A stretch of 64,000 nucleotides of DNA from Monocercomonoides exilis PA203 (taxonomy: Eukaryota > Protista > Preaxostyla): positions 496,001 through 560,000 of the forward strand of contig LSRY02000023.1 of the NCBI GenBank assembly GCA_001643675.2. Direction: 5' to 3'. The translations under genes and the position numbers were made by a program. The notes under the pieces are model-generated. The model was not told the origin of the DNA. It saw only the letters and a list, made by a program, of their open reading frames with translations, and searched no databases. The first letter of the stretch is position 1, and each line of letters opens with the position of its first letter. Below, piece after piece: positions 1 through 51,450 of this stretch.

Positions 1-113
1 AAGAGCAGAGGAAGCTGGCTATTTTCACTGGAATATTTGAGAATGGGAATAATTGGAAAGATAGAAAAGGAAAAAGAGGAAATGGAGTGAGATGAATAAC
101 ACGAAAAACAGCA

Positions 114-2343: not shown

Positions 2344-4399
2344 GCCTCGTCTATCATTCCTATTCAGAAGCACAGATAATTATTTATTCTGAAATAGAAT
2401 TTCAACCAACCTAACACGTTAATGAAATGAATAATATTGATCTGGAATAGCCTATCATCGTGCATGCAACAGAAAATAGAGATAGACTCAGCTTTTCATT
2501 TGGAAGCTGAAAGAATTCACAGAAAGCAGAAAGAGCAGGGCAGAAAACAATATTTGGTACGAATGATTATATGGATGATCTCCCAGAGATTTCTCGATGC
2601 TGTTTGAATTCGACTAGTCGTGAAAGATGAAACAAAGAGAGAAAGCGGGATTTGAGGAAAAGGCATATTTGAAGAGAAATTATATGAGATTCTTGCTCTC
2701 ATATGATATGAACAAGTTGAAATCGGAATGTTGAGGAAATAAATGTTTTTGAAGAACTTTCTGATATGATCGAAGAAAGGAAAATGGAAATATGCTTTCA
2801 ACAATGAGATTTATTTTCATTGGATGCAGAAACCAAAAGAGATGAGGAAATCTAGAAGAAATATTTTTGTCTGAGCCAACATCAAATTTCTCGAAAGATA
2901 AGCTATTATTTATTCTTCAGTTGAAAAAGCGATGAAAGCTCAAGGATTTTTCAAAGATATGGAAAATGGAAAGAATAATAAAAAAATCAGAAAAAGTTTA
3001 TCATTTCCAGTGATTTTTGTATTTGGAGAACGGAATGTGAGAGTGTTTGTGGGAATGAAAGTGGAGACGAGAAGAGAGAGGGAGGTATCGCTGAAGGGAG
3101 CAATGCATCCGAGAGTATTATCCGCTGTGGCGCAGGGGCTTTTTCTGTGATTTGCCACAGGCATCAGTTTCAGTTCCATTGCTGGGATCGATTTTGTTCT
3201 GCGCGATGAGGGGGAGCCAGCCATTGAACTCAGCTTTTCTAATTTTTCACCATTTCATTTAACGTTTGATGAAGCTTCTGAATCAAATTAAAAAAACGGA
3301 GATTTATCTGCTACACAAAAGTGAGGGGAAAATGAGAAAAATAACTATTATTGTTTGATTGATTCCAATATTTTTGTTTTCTTATCATCTTTTCTGTTCT
3401 TCTTTATGATCTTTCTCTTTTCAATGTTAAGTTTTTCCAATTATTAATTTTTAACTACTTTTTTGAAGTTCGATTTATATATTTTCTCCACTTATTAAAA
3501 AAAATTTGATCAAAATATCCTTTTTCGCCAAAAATAAAAAAAAGGTATGGATTTTTGTTTAAATATATAAATCTTATAAATGTTTTATCAATACATGCTA
3601 AATACTCATAAAAAATCAATTCTTGTTATCAGAACAAAAAAAAACTATTTGATCAATAAATACCACAATAGAATTTCTTTTTTCAATTTTTGATCTTTTT
3701 TTATGAAGTCAAAAAAAATCACCCATATGCAGAAGATATATGAGCAATGGAACAATCCCCATTCTTTTCCATTTCCTCTATATTGAACAATCCAGACCTC
3801 CTGTTGTTGTGGACAACTCTTCCTGCCTTTTTTTACGCGATTTGCCTTAAAATCGAAGAATGAGCAATGACTTTCATTTTCACCAAAGCTGGAGGTTTGA
3901 TTATTTCTCGTTTTAATAGATAATCCACTTTTTCAGCCTTTGAATTTAGCCTGCGGAATTCTGCTGAGACTTTGATGGGAGAAAGCTTTTCATACTGAAG
4001 AGACGATGTCGTTTGTGATTTTTTCATTCAATTAATAAAATAAGATCGATCAATAAAATACTAGTCATTCAACCTGAATTTATCATTATTATTTAAACAC
4101 GTTGAAGGTTTTCGATCTAGCTAAAAGTTTTGTTTTGTTTTCTATTTGTTTTCAAATTTAAAAATATATTTGGAGAATTAATTATTGATTTTAATGTCAT
4201 GGGTTTTGTCCTTGTCTATTAATTGTTAATATTCAATAAAAACATTCGCAAACTTTTCCCATCATTTTCAAAGAATTAGAATTACTCATTTTTAATGCTG
4301 AATAATTTCTGATTTATAAGCAACTTTTTCGATCTCTTTTGAAAGTTTTTCGAGATTGAATAATATTTGATGTATCAATCAATCAAGCAATCAATCCAG

Positions 4400-4446
<47 letters not shown>
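4400..4446 (+). repeat. Poly(A) tract, 47 nt
   Basis: Uninterrupted A run preceded by TCAA-like repeats (4374-4396). Confidence 0.9.
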
Positions 4447-4450
<4 letters not shown>

Positions 4451-5099
4451 GAATTTTTTTCAAGAATGATAAACTCAAGTGGAAAGGTCAAATAGTTTTC
4501 GTTGGCATTGAATCAATTGAAATGGAATTAGAAAATTTTAATTTTGTCTCTTTTGATTTCGCATAGCTTTTCTTCTTTTAGCCAAAAATTGTATTTGGCA
4601 AAAACGCTTAAATAAAACATTTCCGCAAATAGTGAACAACCCAGAACGGATTAACAGTGAATGATAAAATTGTGAAATGAATTAAAAACAATCGTAAGTT
4701 TAAAAATAAAATATATTAATTGGAAATGAAAAATCGAACACCAAATATGTGCAGCTTTCAATATAAAAGAAATGAGGAAAAAAGAAAAGAAAAAGAAAAA
4801 GAAAAAGCATAATCAAATGTTTGACTGAAAGCAGAACAAATGAAGAAAATCCTCTTATTGAATTTCTCTTTTTTGATGCAAAATAAGCATTTTTTTGAAA
4901 AAAGCTAGGGAAAAAATAAAAGAAGAATATTAAAAACAGCATCAACATTCGAGAAAATTCAAAAGAATGGATAGCTTTTGTAAAGAAATTGAAAAAAACA
5001 TATATACAAGACAAATCGAACAACAGCAACAAAAATGAAATAACAAAAGATAATTTTAGGCGAATGCTAAACAAAAAATAAGCAATTGTAAGATTAATC

Positions 5100-8639: not shown

Positions 8640-10102
8640 ATGATGTTGCACTCTGATGATAAGAATATTAATGAACTTCAAGAGTTGCCACCAACAGAAA
8701 TAATTTTGAGTTTGTGAATTTCATGTTAACTTTAAATTACTCAGCTTCGTATTATTAATGATCCTTGAAGAATTGTTTTTAGAGTTTGAAGAATGCAGTG
8801 AAGAAGATCAAAGACAGAAAATCATTGAAATGAATGGACTTATCAAAGAAATGAATGGAGAAGAATTCGATTCTATTTTCTCTTCAAAGTTATTCGACAA
8901 AATACTCAAAATGATTGAGGAAGAGAAACTGTCAATGGGGAATGCATGTTTATTGTTGAAGCGTGTTGGATATTTCAAAGGGTTGAAAGGTGGTTGGATA
9001 TATGGTTTTGAACATTCTTTATTGATCGGAAGATTTGAAAAGATGATGATTGATGAAAATGAAAAGAAGAAAGAAGAAAAGAACGAAAAGTTTCTGATTG
9101 ATCTCTGTGAATGCTTTGCTTTGCTGAATTCTGAAATCATTCCAGATGAATTACTTTCAATCATTGTGCCCCTCCTTCTGAAAGTTGCGTTAAAGAAAGA
9201 GGAAAATGAGAAAATGCAAAAAGAGGAGGAAATAGCTTTGCTGGCTTTAAGTTGCATTGATATACTTAATGTATGAACATTTCTATTCCCATATTTGATA
9301 TTACAAATTTTTTGTTTTGTTTTGCTTTTATAAGGAATTGGATAAAGAACAGTATTTTAATGAAATCATAAAAATTATCAAATATCATCAGGAGCATCGC
9401 AATCTGACTCGACTTGCCTATCATTCTGCTTGGAAGTTTTTGATTTGCCGAATATACAAAGACAATAGTTTGGAGGATGTTATTGTAAACGAACTGCATT
9501 TTACGAGAGAAGCAATAAGAGAACTGGAAGAGCTGGCAAAATGGGTTGATGGGAAGAGAGAGAAAGAAGAGGAAAGAAGAGGAAAAGAAGTGAAAGAAGA
9601 GTTTCTAGTTGTGAGATGGATCATTTCGTTGAACGTCTATTTATTTTCTTGCAAATTGTGGAATGAAGAATTAGTCGGAATTCTCAACAGCATTGTTCAG
9701 ATATTTAAAGAAGCAAAAGATAATCACAGGGAAATAAGCAGAATATACCTTTGTTTTATGAGCTTATCTGCGGGAAACAAAACTGTGCAAATTGATGATA
9801 TGTTGAAAAGTGGCGCTATTGATTTTATTTTGGAGGAGATTCACGGATCAGCAATGGACGACTATATTGTTTGCGAATATTTGCATTTTTCGAAGGATAT
9901 TTCATTGAGGTTGAAAGAAAAGACGGATAATAAAATGGAAGAAGTAAAAAGAAAGATAGAAAAAAGGAAAGTGTTTGATAAGATGGAAGAAGAGGGATAC
10001 TCAGATACAGTCACAAGTTTTAAAGAAATATTTGAATTTCTCAATAAAAAATATTATGGCGATTTATCGTTGAATATTTCAGATTATTTTTGGAGTGTCT
10101 GA
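8640..10102 (+). CDS. EEEGYED-family helical protein, copy 1; join(8640..8709,8771..9270,9335..10102)
   Basis: Two GT-AG introns (phase 1 and phase 0) join ORFs 8758-9276 and 9317-10102 in frame. Motifs DLCEC, KEEEIALLALS, RNLTRLAY, KMEEEGYSD. Confidence 0.8.
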
Positions 10103-20765: not shown

Positions 20766-23700
20766 TTGGAAATAATCACCTTTATTCCTTCGTCTTATTG
20801 TTTCTCTTCATCATCTTTAACATTTTCATCATCAAAGCCAACACATCACCCAATTCATTCCTCCGCCCTCTCCAACTACAACACTTTAGCCACTATCATC
20901 GTCTGCGACTTCGCCTTTGTTTCTTCTCTTCTGGCACACTTCTGCGCCCCTGTCACTTCTCCTATTTCTTCCTGCCTTCCATCGCTCTCTGAGATATCTG
21001 CCTTTGCTGAGGGCTCTTGTTCTTCACATCCTTGTTCAGAACTTCCTGCAAATGAATTTGTGGAGTATGTCTCGCTCCATTTAACAGATGAGAAAAATGA
21101 TACGATAATAATACTGCTGCTGATTACACTTGATGTTTCATTGTGCTGAATGGACTTGTGCTGTTTGCAGTGGGGAAGATGGCATTTTGGAAGAAGAAAG
21201 AGGAGGAGAAGGAGAAGGAGAAGATGGAGGAAGAGAATTTGAAATATCATCCTGAAGAAGAATGGAAGAACGATGGGGTAAAGACTCAACTGAAGGAAAA
21301 ATAGAGGAAGGATCAGGAAGAGGGAGAGAAGAAGAAGAAGAAAAAGAAGAAGAAGAAGAAGATGATGATGATTGCTGAGCCAAATCAGACGGATGCTTCA
21401 CAATTGGGAAGAATGAGTCAGCAATAATTCTCATTGCTGCTATTTCGTTTGAGGCTTTCAACTTGCCATCGCTCCAAAATAGCGCATCAAGCACAGTAAC
21501 AGCAACCTGAGGAAACGAAGACACAGAAATGCTGATGAAAGCGAGGACGAGCGACTGCGTTGGCACATTCGGCAGGTAGTCGAAGAAGAAGATGAGGTTG
21601 TGCAAAAGCGGACAGAGAAGATTAGCTTCGTGCAATGCGCGAATGAAAAGAGGATAAGCTGAGCTGCATTCATAAAACAGAAGAAGCGTCGAATCGATGT
21701 TGCATTTTTGCCTTGCAAAATACTCTTTTCTGTTTGGGAATTCTTCTGTGTGTGTTGATTTTACACAATGCTTGAAAGCGCTGAGAGGAATGGAATAAGA
21801 AGAGGAGGAAGAAGAGGAGGAAGAAGAGGAGGAAGAAGAAGAGGAGGAGAAATAAGAAGAATAAGAAGATGAAAGAGTCGAATAAAGACTTCTTTTTTAC
21901 TTGGTAGATAAATAGACAGCTATTTTCTTAGCAAACACTGGAGAAGAGTGGGACAACACACTCAATCCATCCATCAGGCCTTTCACTGCATCCAAAGAAG
22001 AAGAAGAAGAAGAAGAAGAATTGTTTTTTCAAGCAACCGAACAAGGCTTGTTTCCAATGCATTGCAGAAACTATCAGAAACAAGAGGATTTGAAGAAGAA
22101 GAAGAGGAAGATGAAGAAGAAGATGCAGACGAAGAGGATGGCGCACTAGAAAGAGCCAAAGAAGTGTCTGGCAAATTAGTCTGGTTGATTGCAATGCAGT
22201 TGACAATCCAAACGAGCAAATGAGCCATTCCTTCAAAGACGACGCTGTTCGCATTCTGTTTTGCCTCAAATTTTGCACTTTCATCCACAACACACCCAGT
22301 AAACACCTTCAAAAACGCTTCCGCATAAAACTCGTTCAGAATCACGTTCTGCAGATTGTCTGAGGCGAGCGAGGCAAACAAATCAGAAGTGGCAGAGTTG
22401 GATGGCGGAGGAAGGACTGTGGCAAGAGATATGCACGGCACCAGGTCATGAGGGAACTGGAGAACAGACACGTGTTCTGAGTGGAATGTTGGATATGCAG
22501 CTGTTGATGATAATGATGAGGAGGAAGAAGAGGAAGAAGAGGAGGAGGAGGAGGAAGAAGAGGAAGAAGAAGAAGAAGAGGGGAAGCCGTCGATGCTGAG
22601 AAGCTCACTCTGCCAGATGGGACTGGCTCCACCACACTGGGCAGACATATTGAATGAGAAGGATCTGATGTACTCGATCTCGATTGACTGCTGAGAGGAA
22701 TGTGATTGTGCAGATGAAGCAGAAGCAGATGATGATGATGATGAATCAGCTGTCACAGCTGAATTCGGTGTCAACAATGCAAAGTTCGTGAAAGTGATGA
22801 GCGGTGCACCCATCTCCAGCCCTTGGTCAGACGGATCACTCGACACAATCAGCAGAGGCGAGTGGGAAAACCGTGCATTGATAAACAAGACAGCCTCAGG
22901 AGATATTCGCGTGCCTGTGAACTCTGCAAACTTCGGATCCATCACCCGCTCCTCCCTCGTCTCCAGAAGAGCCAGCCGGAACACCCTCGCCACGGCATCG
23001 CGCACAAGAGCGTGTGGTGAGTGCATCAGCAGCTGCAGTAAAGGTTCAGTGATGTCTCTGTCGCAGCAGATGGCTTCGGCTAATTCGTCGCTTTTGCGCA
23101 CGTGGTGCGACAGGGCAAAGAGGAAGGCGACACAAGAAGAATAAACATGTGATGATGATGATGATGATGATGAAGCAGATGAAGCAGATGAAGGATTCTG
23201 AGATAAACTACTTGAGATATAACTCAGAAAATGATCAAGTGATATCAGACAGCACGGTAGAAGTCTGCTTTTGACATTTTGTTCACGTGAAGAAGAAGAA
23301 GATGATGATGATGAAGATGATGATGAAGAAGATGCTAATGTAACTGTGCATGAAACAACAGATAAATACGCCTCCATCCACTTTTCATTCATCTCTCTGT
23401 TTTGTGTGCACAGCAACTCTTCTGACTTGAGAAGCAGCCAGTTAATCCCAATCTATGTCAAATGCTTCTCCAAAAGCAAAAGATATGACTTATGCTCAGC
23501 AACATCTCTACGAATGGAATAAAAACAGGTCAAAGCGAGAGAACAAAGAGAAGAAACGTGGCTGGGTTCTTTTGTTGAAGAAAAAAGAACATCACAAAAT
23601 GACTGCGAAATGATCGAATAAAATGCATCTTCTGGTAAAATTGGAATAGAAGGAAGCGAAATTGTGGAAAAGGATGAATCCGAAGCAAAAAGAGGAGTCG

Positions 23701-26700
23701 GTTTCGTTCCTTTCAAAATCATTAGAATAGAACGAGATGCAGACGCAGACGGAGAAGGGGAATTATACAGACAAGAAATGAGAGAGATCAGCAACGCCAT
23801 TGCAGCTTCACGCTGAACCGGAGGCAGCTCATCTTGACAAGCACTGTTACCATCCAGAGGAGCAAGAGAATACAGCGACTTCACTGCATATGTCCACTTT
23901 CCTGACTGCTTTGACAGAGAAGGGGAAAGAAAGTCCTGGCAGCGCTGAGGGTAATTGGCAAGGAGGAGCAGCCAAGAGCAAACAGGAGACAGAAAGCAAG
24001 CATCTCGCATGAAGGCGAACAGAGGGACGAATTGGATGGCTTTCTTCTGCTTGGCAGGCAGAAGATCGAGCGGCGATGTGAAGAAGTAGAAGAGCTGCTG
24101 GAGCAGAATGGAGAGGTGCTGCTGTGACAGAGAAGCATCTGTTTTGGACAAATACGCTGAGACTGACTTCAGAACAGCCGAAAGTGCGCAGAGGAGCACG
24201 CGGAAAAAACACAGGCGCAGCTGAGTGTCTTCGCAGCGGAAGAGAAAGGCCTTCGCAATCGACGGCGCGCCTGCAATATCTTCAGTGCACAGCTTGTTCA
24301 GCTCCACAGCAGTCATTGCATTCACTGCGGTGGATGCAGTTGAACTCTTCTGGTTTTGCTTCCGGGAAAGGCAAGCATCCCACTCTTTTGCTTCTCCGCT
24401 GAGCAACTCAGTTGTGATGTGCTTGATCAGTTTGAACGACAAGTCTGGTGAGCGGACAAGAATCTGCTCCAACTCCACACTCCACTGCACAAATAGTGCA
24501 TGATGCACTGAATGGGAGAAGGTGTGAAGCAAAAAACACACAGAGAAAAACATAAAGTCGCGAGAAAAGGTCGGATTGGCCTTTGGCACATTCAGAACAC
24601 GCATAGCCAGAGAAGCTGAGGCAGATGAGGATAAAGATGATGAGCTTTTGCCAGCAAGTTTCGTTTTAATCAAAGATGAGGTAGGTGTTGCAGATGAAGT
24701 TCCAGTTGAAGATGATCTGGGATTAGTGACTGTTGTTGCTGCTTCCTCTTCTTCAGCACATTGTTCGCATCCAAACTGCTCAAACAGCCTTCTCACAAAC
24801 GCAAAGAATGTGTTTGAGAAGATCTGTCTGTCTCTCATGATGCTCAACTGTCTCACCAACACACTTTCATCCACACTGCTCATCCAATCTGAAGACGATT
24901 TCATTAGCGAATGCTCTGTCAAGGTAGAATCTGCGAACACATCATCATTTAAAGGAGAACGCATCTTCAGCGGAGACGTGTGGGGAGGTGGAAAATGCAT
25001 TGCGAAAAGAGGAAAAGATCCGATTGCTTGCGATACGGTAAGAGGCAGATGGCTCTCTCTTGTTATTTCTTTCAGCTTTGCCTGTGGAATCTGGCTGAGC
25101 AGCAGGTGCTCGAGGCTCCAGTCGTCTGCAGGCTTTTTCCGCTCGTAGATGAGGATGCATGCCGAGTACGGCTTGACCGTGTCTGCCTCGCTCAGCAGGC
25201 CCAGGCGCTTATACTTGAGGATTTCAGGATCAATCAGCGCAGTGTCGTCCAGGAAGCTCCCGCCAAAGGCCTCGGCTTTTAGTGTCTCGATGGCAGGAGA
25301 AGGGAGTAGCCTAACTCTGTCGTCGTTGAACTCGTACCACTGGTGCGGTGCATCTCTTTCTCGCACAAATGAGATGTAGGGTCCAGCATTGGCTTTCCCC
25401 AAGTGGTTGATGATGCCCTGCAGACGGTATTTGCAGTTGCTCTCCGGACGCAGCTTGTCTTTGCTTTCGTCGTTATGCGGAACCTGCAGATTCTTCAGAT
25501 TCTCTTTGCGTCCAATCTTTTCCAACATGATTGCTGTGTCAGCTTTGGAAAACCGCTTCATACTGCTTAGTTTTTCTTCCCTCACCTGCATCGCCTCCCA
25601 CGTCAATGGCTCGAGATCCAAGTCCTCCTCAATGGGGAACTCAAACTTGTCATTGATCTTCACTCTGTTCCCCGTTAGCGGCTGGTAGTCAAAACGCCTG
25701 AGGAGAATAATGAGTGTGTTAGGCAGGTCTCTCAGAACTGTCTGGTTGATCGCATCAACCGCGTGAAACTTGCCACACACTTTGCATTCGTAATCCTCAA
25801 TCTTCGACCCAACCACCATCGACGCCAACGATTCCTCCAGACTTTTTTTCCCTTTCACTTCCACCTCGAGCGCATTAAAGCCATCGGAATGCCATCGCTC
25901 GTGCCCGCATCTGCAGACATGCAGGTTCATCGTGTAACCCTTCAGAAAGTGCCGGACAAAGTTCGGAGCTGCCGCTGCGTCCAAATGCATTTCCACCTTG
26001 TCCACAAGATACATGAAGAACTCGTGGATGTCACAATGCACGCCATTCACCACCTGCTTCCTGTCCTGGTCAAGATACACCTCCAGAAACTGCTCAGCTT
26101 CAATGAACTCCTTCCTGTTCGGGTTGTCCTGCTGCTCCCAGAAGAGATAGCGTACAGCTCTCCACACAGCGCTGTTCTGCACTTTCTCCTCCTCTGTCAC
26201 GCTGCGCAGCCTCATCTCTGCCATCTTCGTCTCCGGCTCGTCTGGTGGGTGTGTGCTTGTTTCTTTGCTCTTCTGCCACTCACTCAGCACATCTGCTTGT
26301 GATTGTTTTGCCAGCTTCTCCAGGACGCTTCCTTGAAACTGCTCGCCTTCCCGCAGAAGAAGCGTGGAGCACAGCTGCGTGTGCATAAACAGCTGCACAA
26401 ACAGAGAGTTCATATAGCAAAGTGTGCCTGGATTCACAATGCCTCTGTATTTAACCACTTCGCTTTTCTCAACCTTCTCCTCCTTCTTGTGCGATTTTGC
26501 AATCTGCTCGGCGGGTGTGAAGTGGAAAGACGGGTATGAGTTCTTGTCGTTCATCGTCTGCGTCTCATTCAAAAGATGCAGCAGACGCTCTGTGTTTGCC
26601 TCATTCCCGCTGCACAGCGCAGCAATCAGACTCAAAATGGCCTTCCTGCTCTCTTCGTCTGCCACAAAATGGCTCTGAATGAGTTCCACTTCTGAGTTGC

Positions 26701-27200
26701 TATGTGAATGCGACGAGGTCAGCTTCCTCTGCGAATCGCGCCGTGCAATGTTTGAGGGCAAATATGAAGAAGAAGAAGCAGAAGCAGAGAAACTGCGCAG
26801 CATCTCTTTCCCAGCCATTCCTGGTGGTGAAGCACCCGTGGAAGCAGCAACAGCATTGAATCCAGCAACCAGCTTGTCCATCCACAGATAATCAATGAGC
26901 ATCATCCCAAAGGACTTCTCGGGCAGCTTCAAGCCAACTTCTGTTTTGATCTATCTTTCCAGTTTTCTCAGGTTATTTTCTATTGTCGGATTGGATGCGC
27001 AATGAAGCTGAGAAAGCTCGTTCAGAATGACTCTCAGCGCAACTGAGACAGGCAGAAGAGACAGCTGGCGCTTCTTTGTGAGATTGTTCGGAGAAGACAA
27101 TGAAGAGGAAGAGGAAGGGGTAGAGGAAGAAGAAGGTGATGCTCCTGACAATTCATTGATGTACTTATCATCATCATCATCTTCTTCTTCTTCTTCTTCT
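20766..27200 (-). pseudogene. Large ubiquitin-specific protease (peptidase C19, USP9/24/34-like), disrupted
   Basis: Cys box GIVNPGTLCYMNS, HCDIHEFF, LRRFDY..KINDKFEFP, His box IINHLGKANAGPY, WYEFNDDRV, SACILIYER. ORFs 26951-27151, 23453-26932 and 21983-23416 share one frame and are separated by single TAG codons; frameshift near 22025. Confidence 0.8.
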
Positions 27201-28629
27201 TCTTCTTCTCAATCTTCTTCAGATGGAAAGAAAGGAGAAGAAGTTAATCTTCCTTCAAATGATATCGAATTTGATGACTTCGATGATTTTGAAGCTGCTC
27301 ATTCTATTGCGTCATCTTCTTCCTCCTCTTCCTCTTCCTCCTACTCCTCTTCCTCTTCCTCTTCCTCTTCTTCTGATTCCTTCTTTGCTTCAAATCCTTC
27401 TCTTCCTTTAGCTTCTTCCCCTGAATCACAATCAGCACATCAACCTCTTTCATTTCCTTCTCCATTTGCTTTCCCTTCTTCCGCTTCTTCTTCTTCTTCC
27501 TCCTCCTCCTCCTCCTCCTCCTCCTCTTCTTCTTCTTCTTCTTCTTCTTCTTCTTCCTCATCTTCTTCCTTGACTTCTGCGCAAACTTCCTCCACCTTCC
27601 ATGATGTCCGATCCCTCAGTAGTTTACTCAAAATTGAGGTGAATTAAATAACGTGTCCAATTGCTTATATATGATGATATTCGAACATTATCGAAAGAAA
27701 GGAAGAAAATAAAAAGGAAATACAAATGATTTACAAATCAAAAGTGTGTTTTTTTTTTCATTGTATTTATTTTGTGATTAACATTAATTATTTTGTTTTC
27801 CATAATTTTTTCCTATCAATAGTTTGATGATTGGAAACTTTTTTGACTTGTTTCGTGCAAGCAAAACTCGCAAAGCTGATAAGGTTTTTGAAGCTTTGGA
27901 GGCTGCTGCGCCGTCTGATCCCGTGGGATGTTTACTTTATTTTATTTTTCGATACAAAAAAGGAAAGCCTTTCCAAGAGGCAATCCAAACCCGTTTTGAA
28001 GGTTTGCTTTTATATTTTTATTATCATTAAAACATTAAGCAAATAAATGTTATTTTTTATGTTATGATTATTATTATTATTATTCGTTAAAAGAGAAAAC
28101 TACAAAATTTTTATCAAATATCGGTGAAGTGCATAAAAGAAGCCCCTTGAACCTTCGGGTTCGGCTTCTCAGTTGTGCTTCTTCCTTGTTTTCAATTCAA
28201 GAATTGAATCAAGAAGGCTGGGGCATTTCTCCCGGAGAATATTACTATTCACGGGAGAAAAACAAAGCCCCAGCACCTACAGCTTTATCAAGCAGTGATA
28301 AAGTTGTTCTTTCAATTAGAAGTTTTTTTTTATTTTTATTTATAATATTATTTTGGCAAGTTACAAGTATATGGACCATCGATAAAAAATATTTTATATA
28401 TTTATAACGAAACAAAATGGAATATTAATTAATTTAAAATTAGTCATTTTTGTCGAAAAAGTGTTTTTTCAACTTTCCATTTTTCTTTTGATCTGTCCCA
28501 TAACTTTTTCTTGTTTTATACAGGTTTGAAAAATTGGTTTATTCGTTATTTGTGAGGATTTTGTCAAAAACCATTTGATTTTAGTTATATGCCAATTTTT
28601 CGTGATTCGAAAAAAGATATTTCTACGCT

Positions 28630-30096
28630 GTTGAAATCATTTTGCGATTTTACAGTCACCTTCAAAAACACAAACGTTTCTGGGTTTGTAAAATGTTATT
28701 AGAAATAGTTGGTTTAAATAATAAATGCTTTTTTTTTCTTTTTAGATTTTTTCACTATTTTTAGTGAAACTTTCACAGTTGGAACAATTCTCAGAAGCAG
28801 AACAGAAGCAGAAAATTGAAGAAATGAATGAAATAGTTGATGGAATGAATAAAGAAGAATTCAAATCAATTTTCAACGAAGAAACATTCAACAAAATAGA
28901 AAAAATGATTGAAGAAAGGAAAATGTTAATGGAAAATGCTTTTTACTTGCTGAAGCGCATTGGATGTTGCATCAAGCTGAAAAATGTATGGAATCTATCC
29001 TTAATAAGATCTTCTCTGGGCAAAAGATTGCATAAGATGATTATTGAAGAAGAAAAAAAGGAAAAAGATAACAATCATCTTCTTATTGACTTCTGCGAAT
29101 GTTATCTTTTGTTTTACAGCGGAATTCCACCTTTGAAATTGATTTCAACCTGTGTACCATGCCTTCTGAAAGCTTCATTGAGCAGAGAGGAAAACGAGGA
29201 GACACAAAAAGAAGTGGAAATTGCCTTGCTGGCTTTGAGCTAAATGGGATTTTGTGTATGAACATTGTTATTTCATTTTTATTATGTTTGCTTTTTTCAC
29301 ACTTATTTCAAATTAGTTTATCGAACGAGAACTGTATTAGAAGGAAATTACAGAAATCATCAAACATCAACAGAAACACAGAAATCTTACGCATCTGGCC
29401 TATCAATTTGCTTGGCTTTATTTTATAAACAGAATCTTCCATGATGACAGCTTGTAATGTTTTATTATGAATGAGCTGCATTTCGGAAGAGAGGTGAGAA
29501 GGGAATTGGAAGAGCTGATGAAATGCATCGATTGGAATAGAAAAGAAGAAGAAAATGGAAAAAGAAGAAGAGGAAGAGAAACGAACGAAGAGCTTTCATT
29601 GAAGAGATGGGTTGCTACAGTAGTGATTTATTTTCTCAGTAGCCGATTGAAGAATGAAGAAAATGTGGTGCTGATCAAAAACATTGTCCAGGTTCATCGA
29701 GCAGCAAAAGGGGATGATCGCAGAGGGATTCGCAGAGAATGTGTATATGTGTTTCAAGCAGCAGCAAAAAATAAAGATGTGAAAACTTATAACTTTTTGA
29801 AAAGCGGAACTATTGGACTCCATTTGGAGGAGATACAGCAGTCAACGTTAAATTTCAATTTGATGTTTCATTGCTTGCAATTCTTTACGAATGTTTAAAG
29901 ACGATTGAAAGAAAAGAAGGAAGATGATAAGGAAGAAGAGGAAAGAAAGTCAACGAAAAGGAAGGTTTTTGAAAAGATGGAAGAAGAAGGATACGAAGAT
30001 ATCATCACAACTTTCAATGAAACTGTATTTTTTTTCTAAGAAAAATATTTTTGTGTATTGTTATTGAATATTTCCGATAATTTTGTGAATATCTGA
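28630..30096 (+). pseudogene. EEEGYED-family copy 3 (cargo of the TIR element)
   Basis: DFCECY, KEVEIALLALS*, RNLTHLAY, KMEEEGYED; premature TAA at ~29241, 29455, 29896 and 30037; intron-like segments retained. Confidence 0.8.
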
Positions 30097-30569
30097 AGAA
30101 GAAAGAGGAATTTCATTTTGTAACTCAAATATCTGATGAAGTGTGAAATAACAAACCAGTGTTTTTTTTATACTCCATTATTTTCCTTTATTAAATTTCA
30201 GTTTTGAAAGTCCAGATTTTTTTTGAATTGGATGAGTTTTTCTTTTATTTGATTGTTTTTTAGAAGCGGTTAATTTTTCTTTTTTCCATAAAACAAAAAA
30301 TTACGACAGGATTGATTCTTTCTCTATCTATTCTTTTTTCATTTCTTTTTTTTTAAAAGATTCCTTTTTTTCAAATGTTCATTTTTCATAATAATTTTTG
30401 ATATTTTTTGAGAAAACACTTTCATCTATTTTGCAAATCACAGTTCTTTTATTTTTCGAGTGAATATGACTTTAACACGAATAATTACAAAATGGAAATA
30501 TTAAATGATGGAGTGTGTATTTATTGATAAAAATTAGAAATATAGAAAAAAAAAATCCGAATAATTCTT

Positions 30570-30990
30570 ATCAAATTAGAGATTCCAAATATTTCTCGAC
30601 TAATGTTATGGTCCAACCCGATGATACAACCTTCGTTCTTTTATTCTTCCATCCATCACATGTCTTCTTTTTGGATGTCTTTCTTTTCACTTCTTCCATC
30701 TTATTATCTCCTTCTTTCAATCTTCTTTAAACGAACATCTCAAATTACGTTCGCACTTGTGCAATTTTGTCCTTCAACGCTGGTCGCTCAATTTCATCCA
30801 AAACTGCGTCAACTGCTCCATTTTCCAAATGTCTCCAGCTTTCCCAGCTCTGCTTTCTGTTGTTTTTCTCAATGCATAAACACAGTCCTTCTTAATTTCT
30901 CTGTGATTATCTACTGATGCCCGATTCAAATGAACAATGCTGTTAATTTGCAGAGCGGATTCATCGTTCAACTATTTAAGCTATATAAAA
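30570..30990 (-). pseudogene. EEEGYED-family 3' fragment, copy 4 (cargo, convergent with copy 3)
   Basis: INSIVHLNRASVDNHREIKKDCVYAL and KEGDNKMEEVKRK...CIIGL match the C-terminal part of the other copies; frameshifted. Confidence 0.65.
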
Positions 30991-31910
30991 GATAATCGAT
31001 TTTAATTCGAAACAAATAACATCAAAGTTCGAAGAGTGTTTATTTCGAACAATAAACCAATTTTTCAAACCTGTATAAAACAAGAAAAAGTTATGGGACA
31101 GATCAAAAGAAAAATGGAAAGTTGAAAAAACACTTTTTCGACAAAAATGACTAATTTTAAATTAATTAATATTCCATTTTGTTTCGTTATAAATATATAA
31201 AATATTTTTTATCGATGGTCCATATACTTGTAACTTGCTATTATTTTTTTTTATCATTAATAATTTTAATTGTTATTTTGTTTTAAAATAAAAATGTGTT
31301 TTATTGAATGATTTAATTTTTTTTTTAGATGAAAAAGAGTTTCAAACAGCAGAAAGCTGGCTTTTAAGCCACAGTTCATGCAGCTGTGAAAACTCAAGAA
31401 GAATAAAAACAAGTTTGATTTTTATTTAAGTTTTTTTCTATTAATTTTTTTTAATTATCATAAATTATTGTTTTTGTTGAACTTTCAAATATTTATTTAA
31501 GCTCACAATATTACAGAAAAACAAAATGCAGAAGTTGAGAAGCGATGTTGTGATGTATGTTTAAAAAAAAATAAAAAAGAAGAATTAGAAAAAGAAAACA
31601 CAGAAAATAAAAAACAAAATGAAATGAAAAAAATAAAAGAAAACACAAACAATGAAAAAACAGAAACAAAAAAAAAAGAAAGAAGTATTAAATACAAAAG
31701 ATAAAAAGATAATTAAAGAAAATAATAATGAAAATAAAAAAGAAAATAAAATATTAAAAGAAAAATTAATAAATGATAATATAATACACAAAAAAAATAT
31801 CAAATATTATTTTAAAAAATTTAATCCAAAAAAGCAAATATGAAATTTCCAACTCACCCAAATTAAAAAATTACACAATATCATCTAATTTTATCAATGA
31901 AAGCTACAAG

Positions 31911-32965
31911 GCTGCATTGCTGAGTGCTGGGGGGAGCGTTGGGGCTGCATCGCTGAGTGCTGGGGGGAGCGTTGGGGCTGCATCGCTGAGTGCTGGGGGG
32001 AGTGTTGGGGCTGCATTGCTGAGTGCTGGGGGGAGTGTTGGGGCTGCATTGCTGAGTGCTGGGGGGAGCGTTGGGGCTGCATTGCTGAGTGCTGGGGGGA
32101 GCGTTGGGGCTGCATCGCTGAGTGCTGGGGGGAGTGTTGGGGCTGCATTGCTGAGTGCTGGGGGGAGCGTTGGGGCTGCATTGCTGAGTGCTGGGGGGAG
32201 CGTTGGGGCTGCATCGCTGAGTGCTGGGGGGAGCGTTGGGGCTGCATCGCTGAGTGCTGGGGGGAGTGTTGGGGCTGCATTGCTGAGTGCTGGGGGGAGC
32301 GTTGGGGCTGCATTGCTGAGTGCTGGGGGGAGCGTTGGGGCTGCATTGCTGAGTGCTGGGGGGAGCGTTGGGGCTGCATCGCTGAGTGCTGGGGGGAGCG
32401 TTGGGGCTGCATTGCTGAGTGCTGGGGGGAGCGTTGGGGCTGCATCGCTGAGTGCTGGGGGGAGCGTTGGGGCTGCATTGCTGAGTGCTGGGGGGAGCGT
32501 TGGGGCTGCATTGCTGAGTGCTGGGGGGAGCGTTGGGGCTGCATTGCTGAGTGCTGGGGGGAGCGTTGGGGCTGCATTGCTGAGTGCTGGGGGGAGCGTT
32601 GGGGCTGCATTGCTGAGTGCTGGGGGGAGCGTTGGGGCTGCATTGCTGAGTGCTGGGGGGAGCGTTGGGGCTGCATTGCTGAGTGCTGGGGGGAGCGTTG
32701 GGGCTGCATCGCTGAGTGCTGGGGGGAGTGTTGGGGCTGCATCGCTGAGTGCTGGGGGGAGTGTTGGGGCTGCATTGCTGAGTGCTGGGGGGAGCGTTGG
32801 GGCTGCATCGCTGAGTGCTGGGGGGAGCGTTGGGGCTGCATTGCTGAGTGCTGGGGGGAGCGTTGGGGCTGCATTGCTGAGTGCTGGGGGGAGCGTTGGG
32901 GCTGCATCGCTGAGTGCTGGGGGGAGCGTTGGGGCTGCATCGCTGAGTGCTGGGGGTAGTGTTGG
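31911..32965 (+). repeat. 33-bp GC-rich minisatellite, 32 units: GCTGCATYGCTGAGTGCTGGGGGGAGYGTTGGG
   Basis: Units start at 31911+33n through 32934; two recurrent variable positions; 11-aa repeats in the ORF track. Confidence 0.97.
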
Positions 32966-34678
32966 AATGTTGACCAAAATAAATACAAATGTTATAATAA
33001 ATGATTTTTACATTAAAATAGAGAAGAGAAAAAGAAAAAATAGAAAAGACAAATTAGAAAATATTGAAATAAATAAGAAAAATGAAGAATATTAAAATTA
33101 TGATGAACTTGAAATAAGAAAAAAAAATAAATATTGTCTTAAAGAAAAAAATGATACTAAAAAATATTCATATATAGAAAATAATAACAATAATACAATT
33201 TTTTTTTATAATAACTTTTCAAGAAACAAATTTTCTTTACAAAATTTTTATTCAAATATAACCTTTTGTAATATTAACATTTACAATTTTTCCTTCGACG
33301 GGTCCGATGCAACAAGCTGTGAAGCTGCTAGCGAAGGTGGTGCTGATAGTTGTGAAGCTGCGAGCGGGGCAGGTTCAGATGGATTTGGTGCAGCGAGCTG
33401 GGCAGACTTGTTTGGATCTGGAGTTTCAGGGGACGATTGTGGGCTTGGAGCTGGAGGTTTGAGGGATGATTGTGGGCTTGGAGCTAGAGTTGTTATAGAA
33501 AAAGAATTGAATGATGGAGAAGGAATTGAAATGGAAGAAGAGTTGAATAATGGAGAAGGAATTGAAATGGAGGAAGAGTTGGATGGAGGAGAAGGTGGAA
33601 TGGAGGAAGAGTTGGATGGAGGGAGTGATGAAGGAAATGTTGAAGGAAATTCAGAAAATAGTATATGTTTGTTGAAAAATATGAAAAGAAAAAGAAAAGG
33701 CTTTGGAGTTTTTTCTCCAAATGAAAAAAGATTAATTGAAAAAACAAAAAAAGATTTATTTTTTGAAATGAAGAAAGAAGTGGAAGTCAAAATGTCCTAT
33801 TCGACATTTTGCAAGAAAACAAAAAATTTTATAAAATCAAAGAAAAGGACTGATTTATGTGAAATCTGTGAAAGAGGAAAATATTTAGAAAAGAAAAAAT
33901 TAGAAATAGAAAGAAAAGGACTTGAATTGGGCCAAACTGAAGATGATGAATTGAATTTAATAATTCATCATCGAAAAATGGCCCAACATCAAAGAAACTT
34001 TTTTTTTGAAAAAAAAGAAAATTTAAAAAAAAATGAAGTTATTGTTTTAATGGATTTTAAAGAAAATTGGTGTTTGCCTATTTCTAATAATGAGACTGGA
34101 AAATCATTTTTTAATAAGAAACAAATTTCTCATTTGTGTTTTGTGGTTTTTTACGTTGATAATTTTTGTATTTTGAAAAAGTGTTGTTTTAATTATTTTT
34201 CAGAAATTTTATCACATGATTATCGTTTTGTATGTGAATGTTTGAAACAACTTTTGCAATTTGATATTTTTTTTAATGTTGATTCTTTTAACTTTTTTTG
34301 CGACAATGGGCCGCATTTTCGAAATTCTCATGTTTTAAATTTAATATTTTCAGATAATTCTTTTTTGTTTAAAAATAAACATTGTTCACTTTCATTTTTT
34401 GCTGAACATCACGGAAAAAATGAATGTGATAGTGAGTTTGGTTTTTTAACAAATTTAATTAATAATAAACTTGGCAATAGAGTTTTGAATAATATTTTTG
34501 ATTTAATTGATTTTTTTTGTTATAATTGTAATTCTTATTTATTTAACACAAATTCTGTTAATTCATCTTTTTTCATTTCTGATTCTTTAAATAGTAACTT
34601 TAATTATTCTTCTAATATTTTTTCATCTTTTCTAAATCAGGTTAAAAAGAATAATGTCACGAAGCATTATTTTTTAAG

Positions 34679-37598
<2,920 letters not shown>

Positions 37599-39225
37599 TC
37601 ACAAAGAATTAAAAGAAACAAACTGGAATGAAATGAAAATAAAAGGTATGAAAAATTATTTGTTATTTAAAAAAGATTCAGGGAAACTTCTCGTTTCGCC
37701 GCTCAGCTGCGAAAATAGCTCAGGTTTGTTCGAAATTGAATATAAAATTATGAAAAAATTAGAAACAAAAAAAAGAAAAGTTTTTGAAAGAAACGATAAT
37801 AAAAAAATGATATTTTTATTTCAGAAAAAGGAAAATTTGGAAAAGGTGTGAAGAAAGTTATTGAAAATAGAATGAAATTTTTAAATGTGCATCAAGAAAA
37901 AGATTTTTTAAATTTGAATAATAATTTTTATAATAATTCGAATAATTCTTCAGATTCAAATAGCTTGACAAGTGAAACAGGTATGTCACAGGTGTGTAAT
38001 TCAAATTCTGAAAATTCAATTTTTGATTCATTTTTTGATAATTATTCTTTTAATAATTCTATTGAAAATTCTTTTTATAATAAAAATCCTTTTTTTAGCA
38101 AATTTTCATTGTATAATTTGAAAAATAGGTATGAAGGTATGTTTTTTTTTTTTTTTTTTTTTTTTTTGACTATTGAAAGTGATTGACAAGAATTTTTGTA
38201 ATAAACAAACTATTAAATTATTTAGTATTTAATTTCAATTTTATTCATTATTTTTTATTTTTAATTTATTTTTTTAATTTAACTAACTAATTAATAAATA
38301 AAAAATAAAAGTTTAATTAACTAAGAAATAATAAATATTTGTTTATGCTTATCCAATGAAACCGAATTTTATTCGGTTGAGGACTAGACTGATTCGATCC
38401 TGTTGCTTTATAATTTCTTAATGATAGAGTTACTTGCAGGACTTGGGTCCAGAATCAGTTTCCCAGGTAAATAAATGTTTTTTATTATTATTTTTGAAAA
38501 AAAAAGTTTAAAAAAATATTCAGTGAATTATTAATTTAATGTAGAAATTATTGTCGAAATTACGGGTGGAACAAAATTTGGAAAAAGAAAATTTCGCCCC
38601 ATATTTCTTAGTATGTGTTATTTTTAATAGAAAATATATTTTTTTATTCAAATTTTCAAATGGAACTTTTGTCAGAAAAACTTTGAATTTTTGCATTGCT
38701 TTTATTCATGAATTTATGCACTTTGCGTTCAATCTTTAATCTTCGATATTTATTTCGAAAACTTTTTCGAACTTATTCATTTTTATGATTTCATAAATAT
38801 TCAAAATGTTGCAATGGTTAATGAAACTTAAATTTTAAATAAAAAATATGGACAGTGAGTGCTGTGTGATATTTTCTCCATTAGTGAACTAGTTGTTGTT
38901 TATTTCAATTAATAATATTTTTTATGAATTGAAAATATGTAATCGCATAAAACTTTGGACACGTAAAAATTGAAATTAATTCAATAATCCATGGACAATA
39001 ATAAATCGATTGAAACCAAATTGCAAACTTTTTTATTCATAATTATTTATCACTTTTTTAGAATTTTATATTCAGATATGGGAAAATGAGATTTTAAAAG
39101 TGTATTTTTTTAAAAATTACGCTTTTGTGAATGCTAAAAAGGTATTTGTTTAAAATAATATTAGCACTTTAATTTATTTATGATAATGATTTAGTGATTG
39201 TTATTTTATATCGAATCAAATTTGA

Positions 39226-47716: not shown

Positions 47717-49106
47717 ATGGAATCAACAAAAAAGTTTCTAGGTGTGTTTTCACAATTTTTAAATCATTATGAAAGTATTTTTGTCATTCAATTGAGTAGA
47801 AATGATGCATCGGCTGGAAGGTTGTGCTAATGTTGACCGGAAACTGAAAATAGTTAATTTGAACGGTTTTATTGACAATATGAGCAAGGATGAATTTATT
47901 GATATTCTCAATGAAGAAATGTTTGATGAATTAAATTTGTTGATTGCAGCAAACGGGTTATCTTTGGAAAATATTGTTTTTCTGCTGAAGCATATTGGTT
48001 ACTACAAATCTTTATTGGGAATTCGCAATAACAGTTTTGATGAATCACTGTTGTGCAGAAGATTGTCGATGATGATAATTGATGAAAATAGAAAATCACA
48101 AAAAGATGAAAAACTTCTGACTGATCTGTGTGAATGCTGCATTTCATTGGTTGATCAGCAATCCAACTTATCTGAAGAACTTTTTTCGATTTGTCAGGGT
48201 TGCTTATTGAGAGCTCCTTTGAAGAATTATAAAAACAAAAAAATGAGTAATGAAGTGGAAATTGCGTTGATATGCCTGAATTCCATAACTCGTTCTTTGG
48301 TTTGACTATTGTTAAGTGTTGCTTATTTCTATTGATTGTTTATGTTTTCACAGAATAAAGTGTATTATTATGATGCTGATGCGTTTGAATCAATGATTAA
48401 GGATCACATGAATTATGACTTTCTCTCAAACCTGTCTTATCAATCGGCCATAGAGTTTTATTACTCAAAATTATACAATCATTCTATTTTAAATGTCAAT
48501 GATAATCGTCATTTCGTAAGAGAAGCGACAGAAGAATTAGAAAAACTGGGAAGAAGCATCAATTGGACGAAGAAAATTCACAACATCAAAGAGATTAGTG
48601 AAATAATTGTGATTAAGAAATGGTGCTCAATGATCTTCTTTTTTGCAAAGAAATTCCAATTGAGCAAAGAAGAAATGATGTGGCTTCTTCCTTGCCTTGC
48701 AAGATTAATCTGTCTCGCGAAGGATAATCATAAAGAAGTTGCTGAGAAATGCATCACTTTTATTGAAGCAAATGTGAATGAAGATTCATCGATTGTTGTT
48801 CATGATTTTTTGAGAGGGCAAGCTGCATGTTGCGTCTTGGGGGAAATGTGTAGATTACCATCAAAGGATTCTTTGTATCACAGCAGATTGGCATTTTTCT
48901 CGTTTCTTTCAAACAGATTGAACAAAAATGACAGATTGACAAGAGATGAAAAAAAGAGTTATGTTGTGAAGAGGGAGATTGCAGACAGATTAGAAGAAGA
49001 AGGATACGAAGACCTGCTTATAAGTTTTCGTGGAATGGGGAATTGCACGAAGTTTAATGACTTGGATATTGCAACAAATCCTGTTGATTATTTCGTGACT
49101 ATCTAA
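47717..49106 (+). CDS. EEEGYED-family copy 5 (divergent); join(47717..47741,47800..48299,48354..49106)
   Basis: Same two introns (phase 1, phase 0); LLKHIGY, DLCECC, NEVEIALICL, RLEEEGYED. Confidence 0.8.
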
Positions 49107-49347
49107 GTTCAACAAACTTGTCAGGTGCATGCTGCATTGAAGAGGCAAAACGAAATTTAGCCGAGGTGCTTTTCACTCTTTTAATTTTAAAAAAATCAAA
49201 AAAGCAGAAAAAGGAAATGTGTTTATGATTTGTTTCAGTTTAATTCCAATTATTTTTGAATTTGATTGAGTAACTTTGATAAACATTTTATTTCGATTTG
49301 AACTCTGTTATTTTTTATTAAATCCTATGATTTTTTATTTGTGTGTA

Positions 49348-50359
49348 GGGTCAACTTTTTAATGGGACTTTTTCATTTATTGGCACTTTTTTTATTTTCG
49401 ACAACAAAAAGCTGAAAAGTGTAAAGTGGCTTTCAGCATTTGGATAACAGATTTTAACAAAGTTTGTTCAATTTATTACCGGTTTGTTTTTTAATTTTTA
49501 TTTATTATTTAACGAGACATTACGTTTTTTTTGATAAATTTGAATTGGTTTTTCCCACTCAACCAAGCATTTCCAGAAAATGAAAAATACTGTTTTCAAA
49601 AGCACTAACTTTTATCTAGCTGTTTTTTAATTCTTTTTTTTTGGCAAACAATTTTTTCGTGTTATTTTTGCATTTCATTTTTTTAACAACATGCTAACAT
49701 AAAACTGATTGTTTCTTTTAAAATATAATGAAATGATAAAAATAAAAATTTGATATGAAAAACAAATACTCTAATAATGAAGTGTTGAAAAAATAAAACG
49801 TTAATTTTTTATATTTGTCAAGAACTTAACAATGTCACAAAAGTTTGATCGAAGATCAAATATTGTTGGAGCCATTTGTCCGTTAAAGATAAATAGAAAA
49901 TGAGAATGTTTTATTTTTTCAACACTTCATTATTAGAGTATTTGTTTTTCATATCAAATTTTTATTTTTATCATTTCATTATATTTTAAAAGAAACAATC
50001 AGTTTTATGTTAGCATGTTGTTAAAAAAATGAAATGCAAAAATAACACGAAAAAATTGTTTGCCAAAAAAAAAGAATTAAAAAACAGCTAGATAAAAGTT
50101 AGTGCTTTTGAAAACAGTATTTTTCATTTTCTGGAAATGCTTGGTTGAGTGGGAAAAACCAATTCAAATTTATCAAAAAAAACGTAATGTCTCGTTAAAT
50201 AATAAATAAAAATTAAAAAACAAACCGGTAATAAATTGAACAAACTTTGTTAAAATCTGTTATCCAAATGCTGAAAGCCACTTTACACTTTTCAGCTTTT
50301 TGTTGTCGAAAATAAAAAAAGTGCCAATAAAGGAAAAAGTCCCATTAAAAAGTTGACCC
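49348..50359. mobile_element. Foldback/MITE: 452-bp TIRs, 108-bp spacer, TA flanks
   Basis: 49348-49799 is the reverse complement of 49908-50359 (one mismatch noticed); termini TA|GGGTCAAC...GTTGACCC|TA. Confidence 0.9.
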
Positions 50360-51450
50360 TATGGCATTATTATGGATGATCTTTTTTGAAATCATGTTTT
50401 CATCCGAGTTTTGTTCAGATTATGTTTCTCCAAGCAAATGGTTTAAAAATAGCTTTTTCTGAGTGTTCTGTTTCCAAAATGGTGTTCGTATTTCAGATAA
50501 TCTATTTTTGAGTCATTTGCATGGAGAAAAATTATTTGAACAAAACTGGAATGAAAGTGTGATTTCAAAAAGGATTGTTATTATTCGTTGAAATACGAAT
50601 GAAATATATATATTTGTTTTTGATTTTGAATATGTTTTTTTTTTTTTTTTTCTTTTTCATTTTTATTTATTTATTTTTTATTTTGCAAATGTCATTTATT
50701 CCATTTGAAGTGTGATTTTATTTGTGTGAACAACATTTTGACCAAATGCATTTCCTTCATTTGAGCGAATATATTTTCATTGAATCTCTATTTTCAGCAA
50801 TAACAAAAAATAAATCAATTTTTTGCGTTGTTGATAAAAGATTTCTGGTTTTTTTAACATTCAAGAAAATAAAAGGATGGATTATTCTTTTTGGTGTTGA
50901 AAGTTTTCAAACATGAAAAGCTTTATAAAGATTTTCAACATCTATTAAAATCGATTTTTTCCAAAAGATTAAAAGACGATTTGAAGTTCATTGCCATTCT
51001 TCAAATTGGAGAAAAAAAGAGAAAATTGCTTTTTTTGCAAATCAAATAGTGTTCAAAACAAATTTCACATTCATAACAAGGAAAATTGGCAATTTAATGA
51101 AATTTTTTTGAAAATTATTTCTTCAAAAATAATCTCATAAATTAAGAGTTGAATGATAAAAGTGTGGCTCATATTCTTGAATTAAACATTTTCGATCTTT
51201 ATTCTATTTTTTTATAAAAGATATGACAGTCTTTATCTGCAAACAAAACAAGATTGAGCTATCCTTTCAACGCACCACCATTTGAGAGCTTATTTCAATT
51301 TTGCACATTTCAGAAGCCTTGCTTCATTTCAAAAAGAGATAAATTAAAAAATTTTGAAATATTTCAAATGATTGCTTTTTATTTTTGTGAAATGATGAAA
51401 CAAGAAAAACAAATAATTGTGAGTCACAAAATTCAAAACATCTCATTTTC

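Follow-up and report, generated by a model that had tools for sequence, protein, structure and literature searches.

What kind of transposon occupies positions 28355-31239 of a 64,000-nucleotide stretch of the Monocercomonoides exilis genome (the window; C18:496001-560000 of an 82.3-Mb, 101-contig assembly), and how did it come to carry a gene of a large host family? An initial annotation of the window described a gene-capturing Mutator-like element (Pack-MULE) bounded by a 9-bp direct repeat, and suggested that such captures drive the expansion of the host family. Comparison with the other elements in the genome that have the same ends gives a different answer. The window element is an internal-deletion derivative of a transposase-bearing Merlin parent, and its passenger gene was inherited from transposase-bearing parents and not captured by the window element itself. 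The complete account, which also includes the uptake of the passenger from the host, the capture of a second host gene and the concerted evolution of the element arms, is given a probability of about 0.88. The window copy by itself is ordinary, namely a Merlin deletion derivative in a species already known to have Merlin. Three things make its family unusual for Merlin: long concerted arms, a host gene that travels as a passenger in the autonomous element, and a subgroup of Pack type whose core is a captured gene fragment.

Termini, duplications and transposase

How many elements share the ends of the window copy? A genome search with a 25-nt terminal pattern, allowing at most two mismatches, found 51 forward and 49 reverse termini, 100 in total, while the reversed pattern, used as a control, found 0. 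With the 189-bp arm as the query, 107 candidates were obtained; the 40 that were scored have 84-100% identity and mostly form inverted pairs 1.6-12 kb apart. Results on paired elements rest on 34 pairs out of ~50 elements. The family terminus reads GGCAAGTT...AACTTGCC, with a start of the form GGCAAGTT[A/C]CAAG, and GGCAAG stands at the start of each of the first 30 loci and of the large majority of the 100 termini. Perfect 8-bp target-site duplications flank 19 of the 34 pairs, the window copy included.

Is the duplication in the window 8 or 9 bp long? A 9-base direct match (TATTATTTT) is indeed present there. The last base of the right end, at 31239, is a T where the family has C (a single C-to-T change, read as AGCAAG on the complementary strand), and the 9-mer appears because this mutated terminal T matches the base preceding the left duplication. 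The duplication is therefore the 8-bp ATTATTTT, and the ninth base counted by the initial annotation is the mutated end of the element. The identical 188-bp terminal inverted repeats (TIRs) that had been described are real. A repeat search of the window returned inverted arms at 28341-28543 and 31051-31253 (203 nt, 97%), and in a pairwise alignment 188 of 188 consecutive bases are identical, with an abrupt loss of identity on the inner side. A genome search with the TIR had been proposed as a check; it yielded the many paired copies with duplications that were foreseen, but with duplications of 8 bp and not 9.

Could the arms be a local inverted duplication or an artefact of assembly, with no transposon involved? 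The PA203 assembly is Nanopore-based (PMC8767320), and four terminus pairs, L040 (C25:99019-101161), L041 (C40:656520-659293), L042 (C33:392727-395057) and L059 (C23:118737-122206), have reverse-complementary 8-bp flanks and not direct repeats. These four are palindromic structures, in which an inverted duplication runs past the element ends into the flanking DNA. For the window copy, such an origin has practically no probability, given the 100 termini across the genome, the perfect 8-bp duplications and a sibling copy elsewhere with different flanks. In addition, contigs of two 2016 short-read runs bridge the left junction between flank and element without differences. The alternative named in the initial annotation itself, a repeat unique to this locus or a misassembly, is ruled out by the same bridged junction and by the count of 100 termini against 0 in the control.

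Which transposase is found between these ends? Three long pairs with the same termini (L031, L032 and L033) are each 5.8-5.9 kb in length. In L031, an open reading frame (ORF) of 340 amino acids (L031:5238-6260, minus strand) matches Pfam DDE_Tnp_IS1595 with 61.5 bits against a cutoff of 27, over profile positions 25-151 of 153, and the transposase ORF of L033 matches the same domain with 55.7 bits. The Pfam match spans the domain; VQVDE, WSDEW and NAIEAYW, visible in the L031 ORF, are candidate motifs for the DDE catalytic triad. The L031 transposase frame runs for 365 amino acids without a stop, and this copy also has identical arms and a perfect duplication; judged from its sequence, the L031 transposase is the likely autonomous partner. 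When used as a genome query, it finds about a dozen family copies at 66-100% identity among 844 first-look candidates, with many further loci at ≤39% that represent other Merlin families. Nested at L053:4491-5333, in an element at C12:1560860-1569016 that belongs to the second subgroup described below, is the transposase of another Merlin family, which has 35% identity to that of the present one.

Merlin elements are defined by GG termini, 8- or 9-bp duplications and DDE_Tnp_IS1595, and M. exilis has >100 Merlin copies in at least seven families, all with 8-bp duplications and mostly with 23-29-bp TIRs (PMC8101967). The present family has an IS1595 transposase between its shared termini, 8-bp duplications and TIRs that start with 5'-GG; it is therefore a Merlin family and not a Mutator one. 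Merlin elements have been described with one gene (PMC8101967), whereas in the long copies found here the transposase is accompanied by an armadillo-like gene and by part of another one. The difference concerns what the element contains and not how it works, and it does not argue against membership in Merlin.

The earlier interpretation held that a Mutator-superfamily element with a 9-bp duplication had made its own capture of host genes, and that such captures expanded the host family. It drew on long TIRs that start with G, on host-family DNA inside the element, on the lack of a transposase and on the 9-base match. Nevertheless, it is very improbable. Mutator elements make duplications of 9-11 bp, as opposed to the 8 bp of this family, and where an autonomous MULE with the same termini had been expected, the transposase is of the IS1595/Merlin type. 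No MULE domain was found among the ORFs tested by Pfam and no transposase of the hAT or P/THAP9 type, IS1595 being the sole transposase type in the family elements. As discussed below, the cargo came from a transposase-bearing parent, and the host family lies nearly entirely outside such elements.

The deletion derivative and its passenger gene

How is the window element related to the transposase-bearing copies? Positions 1-289 of the element are 90-92% identical to positions 1-290 of the transposase end of the parent, and positions 252-2884 align at 79% with positions 3168-5766 of L033, reversed so that both have the same orientation. The two parent alignments overlap at GAAATCATTTT, an imperfect 11-bp microhomology, and contigs of a 2016 run that represent transposase-bearing copies part from the window at precisely position 28643. 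What is missing from the window element is ~2.9 kb comprising the transposase after codon 18, a low-complexity region and a spacer. The initial annotation was thus correct in finding no transposase enclosed, as just the first 18 codons are left.

The same derivative is present elsewhere in the genome. A copy on C26 (L034) is 2,884 bp long and 96% identical, lies in the opposite orientation and has the same junction; its flanks are unrelated to those of the window copy, and its duplication is AAAAATAT. On C36 there is a third copy, with 94% identity. It follows that the derivative has moved by transposition. Its history probably began with a 5.8-5.9-kb parent made up of a TIR, the transposase gene, a low-complexity spacer, a complete armadillo-like gene of two exons, the 3' half of another copy that converges on it, and the other TIR. 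An internal deletion of ~2.9 kb across the 11-bp microhomology, perhaps by abortive gap repair or template switching, would have taken the transposase save for its first 18 codons. The derivative would then have been mobilised in trans, presumably by the transposase of the family, and is now found at at least three loci. The features of the window copy are listed in Table 1.

Table 1. Features of the Merlin derivative and its flanks, in window coordinates
Feature	Position	Strand	Remarks
Element proper	28355-31239		2,885 bp; flanked by an 8-bp target-site duplication
Left target-site duplication, ATTATTTT	28347..28354	.	Same as 31240-31247; 8-bp length set by the family
Left terminal inverted repeat, start GGCAAGTTACAAG	28355..28543	+	28356-28543 pairs with the reverse complement of 31051-31238
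Merlin transposase remnant, first 18 codons, MPIFRDSKKDISTLLKSF	28589..28642	+	tblastn with the L031 transposase, 94% over residues 1-18
Internal-deletion junction, imperfect microhomology GAAATCATTTT	28633..28643	+	Overlap of two parent alignments
Passenger exon 1 (armadillo-like 'EEEGYED' family)	28764..29243	+	48-53% against exon 1 of TIR-less window copies
Retained passenger intron, 61 nt, GTATGA...TAG	29256..29316	+	Aligned to host and other element-borne introns
Passenger exon 2 with EEEGYED motif	29317..30093	+	tblastn to host exon 2: residues 8-261, 46%
Convergent 3' fragment of a second family member	~30655..30968	-	tblastn, host exon-2 residues 116-221
Right terminal inverted repeat, ends ...CTTGCT (family ...CTTGCC)	31051..31239	-	1 terminal mismatch (AGCAAG...)
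Right target-site duplication, ATTATTTT	31240..31247	.	Same as 28347-28354; family-wide 8-bp length

What does the passenger consist of? Two convergent members of a multicopy family, one near full length and with an intron, had been described in the initial annotation, and the mapped exons, intron and fragment agree with this. The intron has the same position in TIR-less and in other element-borne copies; its retention at this position means that the passenger was acquired as DNA. A non-coding spacer (30094-30654) separates the main gene from the fragment. The full gene and the fragment both lie next to the transposase in L031, L032, L033 and L064, and the 3' fragment is present in L033, L034 and L007 as well as inside both arms of the 1.86-kb elements described below.

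The passenger is broken by stops or frameshifts in all element-borne copies, including the one beside the open transposase frame in L031. Exon 1 of the window copy closes in a premature stop right after LLALS, which is TAA in the window and TGA in the C26 copy; at this position L031-L033 and the host copies have a sense codon. Exon 2 is a single frame with four in-frame stops, three of them private and one common to the C26 copy. The second stop shared by the window and C26 copies stands 25 codons before the end, where the C36 copy has Lys. Private lesions number one frameshift and two stops in the C26 copy and two stops in the C36 copy. Since stops are shared across loci, the element was still moving once its passenger had one or two stops; most of the damage to the passenger came after that movement. 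Of the earlier proposal that the element moved after its cargo had decayed, the part that stands is the movement of a passenger with two stops now common to different loci. The extent of the decay does not stand, most lesions being private, and the identical TIRs that had been cited for it are no evidence.

In which direction did the gene travel? The second gene of a transposon can be native to it, as is ORF2 of PIF/Harbinger or CACTA elements. On this model, the armadillo-like gene would belong to the Merlin element from the start, and the ~2,000 TIR-less copies would be remnants or domesticated descendants that passed from element to host. In favour of this model, each of the transposase-bearing copies examined contains the gene, the phylogeny is star-like, as after a burst, the element-borne copies can be held as one clade and no homologues beyond M. 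exilis appear in the top 120 of 163 matches. A native gene is nonetheless improbable. The passenger is broken in every element-borne copy, even in the sole one whose transposase frame is open, while most TIR-less copies are open at ~50% identity and are without flanking repeats; this argues for transfer from host to element. So does the other Merlin family nested in L053, which is without such a gene, in line with the single gene of described Merlin elements (PMC8101967). The window and L033 passengers are 79% identical in DNA and ~51% in protein, as expected under neutral decay, and this gap also points from host to element. Moreover, the element contains a truncated second copy, as would be expected from a chunk of a gene pair, and the same lineage has demonstrably captured another host gene.

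Host-to-element transfer would have taken place once, at the DNA level, into an ancestor of the Merlin lineage from a very large host family, and within the elements the passenger seems to evolve as a pseudogene. Its source may have been a tail-to-tail gene pair like those in the window, because the combination of a full gene with the 3' half of a convergent neighbour mirrors such host pairs.

How large is the host family, and do the elements account for its size? Family searches were made with exon 2 alone. As a genome query it gave 1,960 first-look candidate loci, and the 146 that were scored all have E < 1e-71 and ~50% identity, mostly in open frames. The window itself contains four other copies in two tail-to-tail pairs (8758-10102 with 13328-11894, and 47802-49106 with 52853-51451). 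All four consist of two exons in open frames, with 23-53% identity to the copy in the element. An enrichment of family members between TIRs had been named as support for element-driven expansion; no bounding inverted repeats were found around the TIR-less gene pairs in the window. A near-perfect palindrome at 49346-50361, between the convergent genes of the second pair, has 496-nt arms (96% complementary) and a 24-nt spacer, and may be a fold-back insertion or one resembling a miniature inverted-repeat transposable element. Open armadillo-like copies are strongly enriched on C48 (658,552 bp), where the scored matches include at least 20 loci, and C48 has no family termini. With ~2,000 family loci against ~50 elements, of which about a dozen among the 34 pairs were found to hold the gene or a fragment, the element does not drive the expansion that had been attributed to it. 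These elements do not account for the ~2,000 copies of the armadillo-like family, nearly all of whose loci lie outside them.

What kind of protein does the family encode? The database relatives among the 120 matches listed of 163 are all uncharacterised MONOS_ proteins of M. exilis without Pfam domains, and no homologues from outside M. exilis appear among them. Pfam gives no match for the armadillo-like passenger protein or for the giant-gene cargo protein discussed below. The fold of the annotated protein P0001, encoded on C48, was predicted with confidence from a 46-sequence family alignment as an all-helical solenoid (predicted local distance difference test, pLDDT, 85.9). The best PDB matches of the model are designed armadillo-repeat proteins, importin-alpha and beta-catenin, with template-modelling (TM) scores of ~0.45-0.55 and E ~1e-3 to 1e-4. 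An Atlas feature search on the passenger family, which serves as a lead only, indicates an ARM/HEAT-like protein and agrees with the P0001 fold. On the basis of this model, the family is predicted to be armadillo-like.

Concerted arms and a second captured gene

Are the identical arms of the window element a sign of recent insertion? Across the first 150 bp, the two arms of one element have a median identity of 99.3%, against 78.8% for arms of different elements. When elements are compared two by two, the ratios of concerted to side-specific differences are 18:0, 91:0, 87:0, 19:0 and 15:0, and between the window and C26 copies there are three concerted columns, in which both arms of each element are in one state. 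As all informative differences are concerted, the arms have been homogenised within each element, and their identity is therefore no clock of insertion. It would be arm-to-arm copying, and not recent insertion, that keeps the two arms of each element identical. Such strict concerted evolution makes TIR identity unusable as an age estimate for these elements.

Arm length varies from 157 to 633 bp across the family, by inclusion of internal sequence. In four 1.86-kb elements, L035 (C21:1266539-1268400), L036 (C12:499337-501197), L037 (C47:987149-989019) and L038 (C60:436492-438355), the arms are ~615 bp long and 98-99.8% identical within the element, and each arm includes an armadillo-gene fragment. 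All four have perfect 8-bp duplications. Their arms have been lengthened via inverted duplication of one end.

Has the same lineage taken up other host DNA? A second subgroup, group 2 (L048-L067), has only the ~158-bp arms in common with the elements described so far (group 1), at ~80% identity; the group-2 interiors are related to each other. The interior of L066 contains an ORF of 730 amino acids, for which an Atlas lead indicates a right-handed beta-helix of the Pmp/DUF1565 kind, the nearest cluster being from Preaxostyla. Open frames of 3,900-4,330 amino acids on C80, C42, C14 and C15 have an internal part that matches this ORF at 87-93% identity; for further giant paralogues the identity is 26-34%. 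One of the giant genes, at C80:1881887-1885562, has a full frame of 4,328 amino acids. In DNA comparisons, eight giant host genes align solely to positions 400 (or 373) to 4068/4069 of the L066 interior, with 85-93% identity, whereas the element copies align across positions 1-4508. The same boundaries in eight paralogues, together with the homology of the segment in distant paralogues, mean that a 3.67-kb piece passed from host to element once and was then amplified. Gene capture by the present Merlin lineage is therefore well supported, and the varied cargo that the initial annotation had named as favourable evidence is found, for this family though not for Mutator. The captured piece, internal to a giant and possibly beta-helix-like host gene, forms the core of this second non-autonomous subgroup.

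Perfect 8-bp duplications flank the group-2 elements L049, L050, L054-57, L060 and L067. As non-autonomous TIR elements with a host-gene interior and duplications at several loci, the group-2 elements are of the Pack-TYPE kind. The window element likewise contains a host-family gene with its intron and has copies elsewhere with different flanks. Among group-2 copies on C60, C25, C7, C35, C22, C51, C12 and C91, many have an internal deletion of ~2638-3646 in the coordinates of the L066 interior, which marks a sub-lineage amplified after the deletion.

How firm is a single origin of the passenger? A tree of exon 2 was built from 58 TIR-less and 22 element-borne rows, in which broken copies were anchored on the query, stops being written as X and breaks as gaps. 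The copies of the window, C26 and C36 form a group at 100 (starred), within a starred clade that also contains L033, all element-borne fragments and two C48 genes. Constraining the ten element-borne main genes to a single clade gave a log-likelihood 46 units better (approximately unbiased test, p-AU 0.858). A single origin of the element-borne passengers is thus compatible with the data, neither rejected nor proven.

Several observations weigh against the account given here. The exon-2 tree is star-like and poorly resolved, and in a free quick tree the ten element-borne main genes split into two groups. No source locus for the passenger was identified, the nearest TIR-less copies being ~55% identical. 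As the element-borne genes are decayed and on long branches, a second capture, or exchange with host copies, may have occurred. Fifteen of the 34 pairs are without a clean duplication, and four of these have the reverse-complementary flanks described above. No empty site or excision footprint was found for the family elements, which is why mobility is deduced from duplications and from copies at several loci. L064 (C25:1878752-1888751) was considered for a comparison of filled and empty sites and rejected, as the sequence to the left of its group-2 element does not match the group-1 left end. At this locus the group-2 element adjoins a group-1 element cut at transposase codon ~33, and the missing left part is absent on the other side; it is a truncated or rearranged junction and no clean nested insertion.

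Comparison with other elements and the surroundings of the insertion

How does the family compare with other Merlin elements? The Merlin families reported from Monocercomonoides sp. PA203, the same host species, also have DDE_Tnp_IS1595, GG termini and 8-bp duplications, and in them, too, broken and intact transposase copies coexist (PMC8101967). The reported elements mostly have TIRs of 23-29 bp and contain transposase only (PMC8101967), unlike the present family with its long concerted arms, its passenger host-family gene in the transposase-bearing copies and its non-autonomous derivatives built on captured gene DNA. A literature search found no report of gene capture by Merlin. Among DNA transposons, such capture is known chiefly from the Mutator, CACTA and hAT elements of plants and from Helitrons. 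On the 'Pack-Merlin' reading given below, the present family would, to our knowledge, be the first Merlin family that transduplicates genes, and also the first example of a Pack-type system in a metamonad.

Plant Pack-MULEs and other Pack-TYPE elements are similarly non-autonomous TIR elements that carry host gene DNA with introns and have been amplified by transposition (PMC8903248, PMC5861414). In group 2, as in Pack-TYPE elements, a sharply bounded gene fragment lies between element-specific subterminal sequences. There are also differences. Pack-TYPE elements belong to the Mutator, CACTA, hAT and PIF superfamilies of plants, whereas the present family is Merlin, has 8-bp duplications and lives in a metamonad protist. 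In place of thousands of independent captures, two captures are seen here, each of which was amplified. Unlike in Pack-TYPE elements, the group-1 passenger rides in the autonomous element itself.

The arms find parallels in Galileo (P superfamily) and Foldback elements, which have long arms of variable length, extend them by inverted duplication of internal sequence, and keep the two arms near-identical within a copy despite divergence between copies. Superfamily and host differ from those of the present family, and here the extended 615-bp arms of the 1.86-kb elements include a gene fragment. Fold-back or template-switching repair may yield arm extension, internal deletions, palindromes into the flanks and captures alike. 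Whether all this amounts to a 'Pack-Merlin' system, in which two unrelated host-gene pieces were taken up, the long arms are continually rebuilt from each other and one shared repair route might underlie both, is a proposition with about an even chance of being right.

About 35% of the M. exilis assembly consists of 'unclassified repeats' (PMC8767320), and within the repeats of this species the present analysis separates a transposon from an expanded host family. It also provides two clean protist cases in which the boundaries are exact, introns have been retained and an autonomous partner is likely, so that the mechanism of capture becomes testable outside plants.

What surrounds these insertions? 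The flank of L033 contains a piece of a DDE_1 (pogo-like) transposase (L033:6237-6686, minus strand, 23.8 bits) and that of L066 a piece of a DDE_3 (Tc1-like) transposase (L066:5094-5393, minus strand, 28.6 bits); these two Merlin copies therefore sit in or beside other transposons. In composition and gene structure the window is eukaryotic. The DNA into which the window element is inserted is AT-rich and non-coding, with a large minus-strand ORF (23453-26932) on one side and a region rich in tandem repeats and (TTTA)n on the other. In that region, a 33-bp unit (GGCTGCATTGCTGAGTGCTGGGGGGAG...) is repeated in tandem at positions 31877-33000, in a long array that is open in several frames. The array is followed, at 34000-38000, by ~4 kb with a G+C content of 5-7%.

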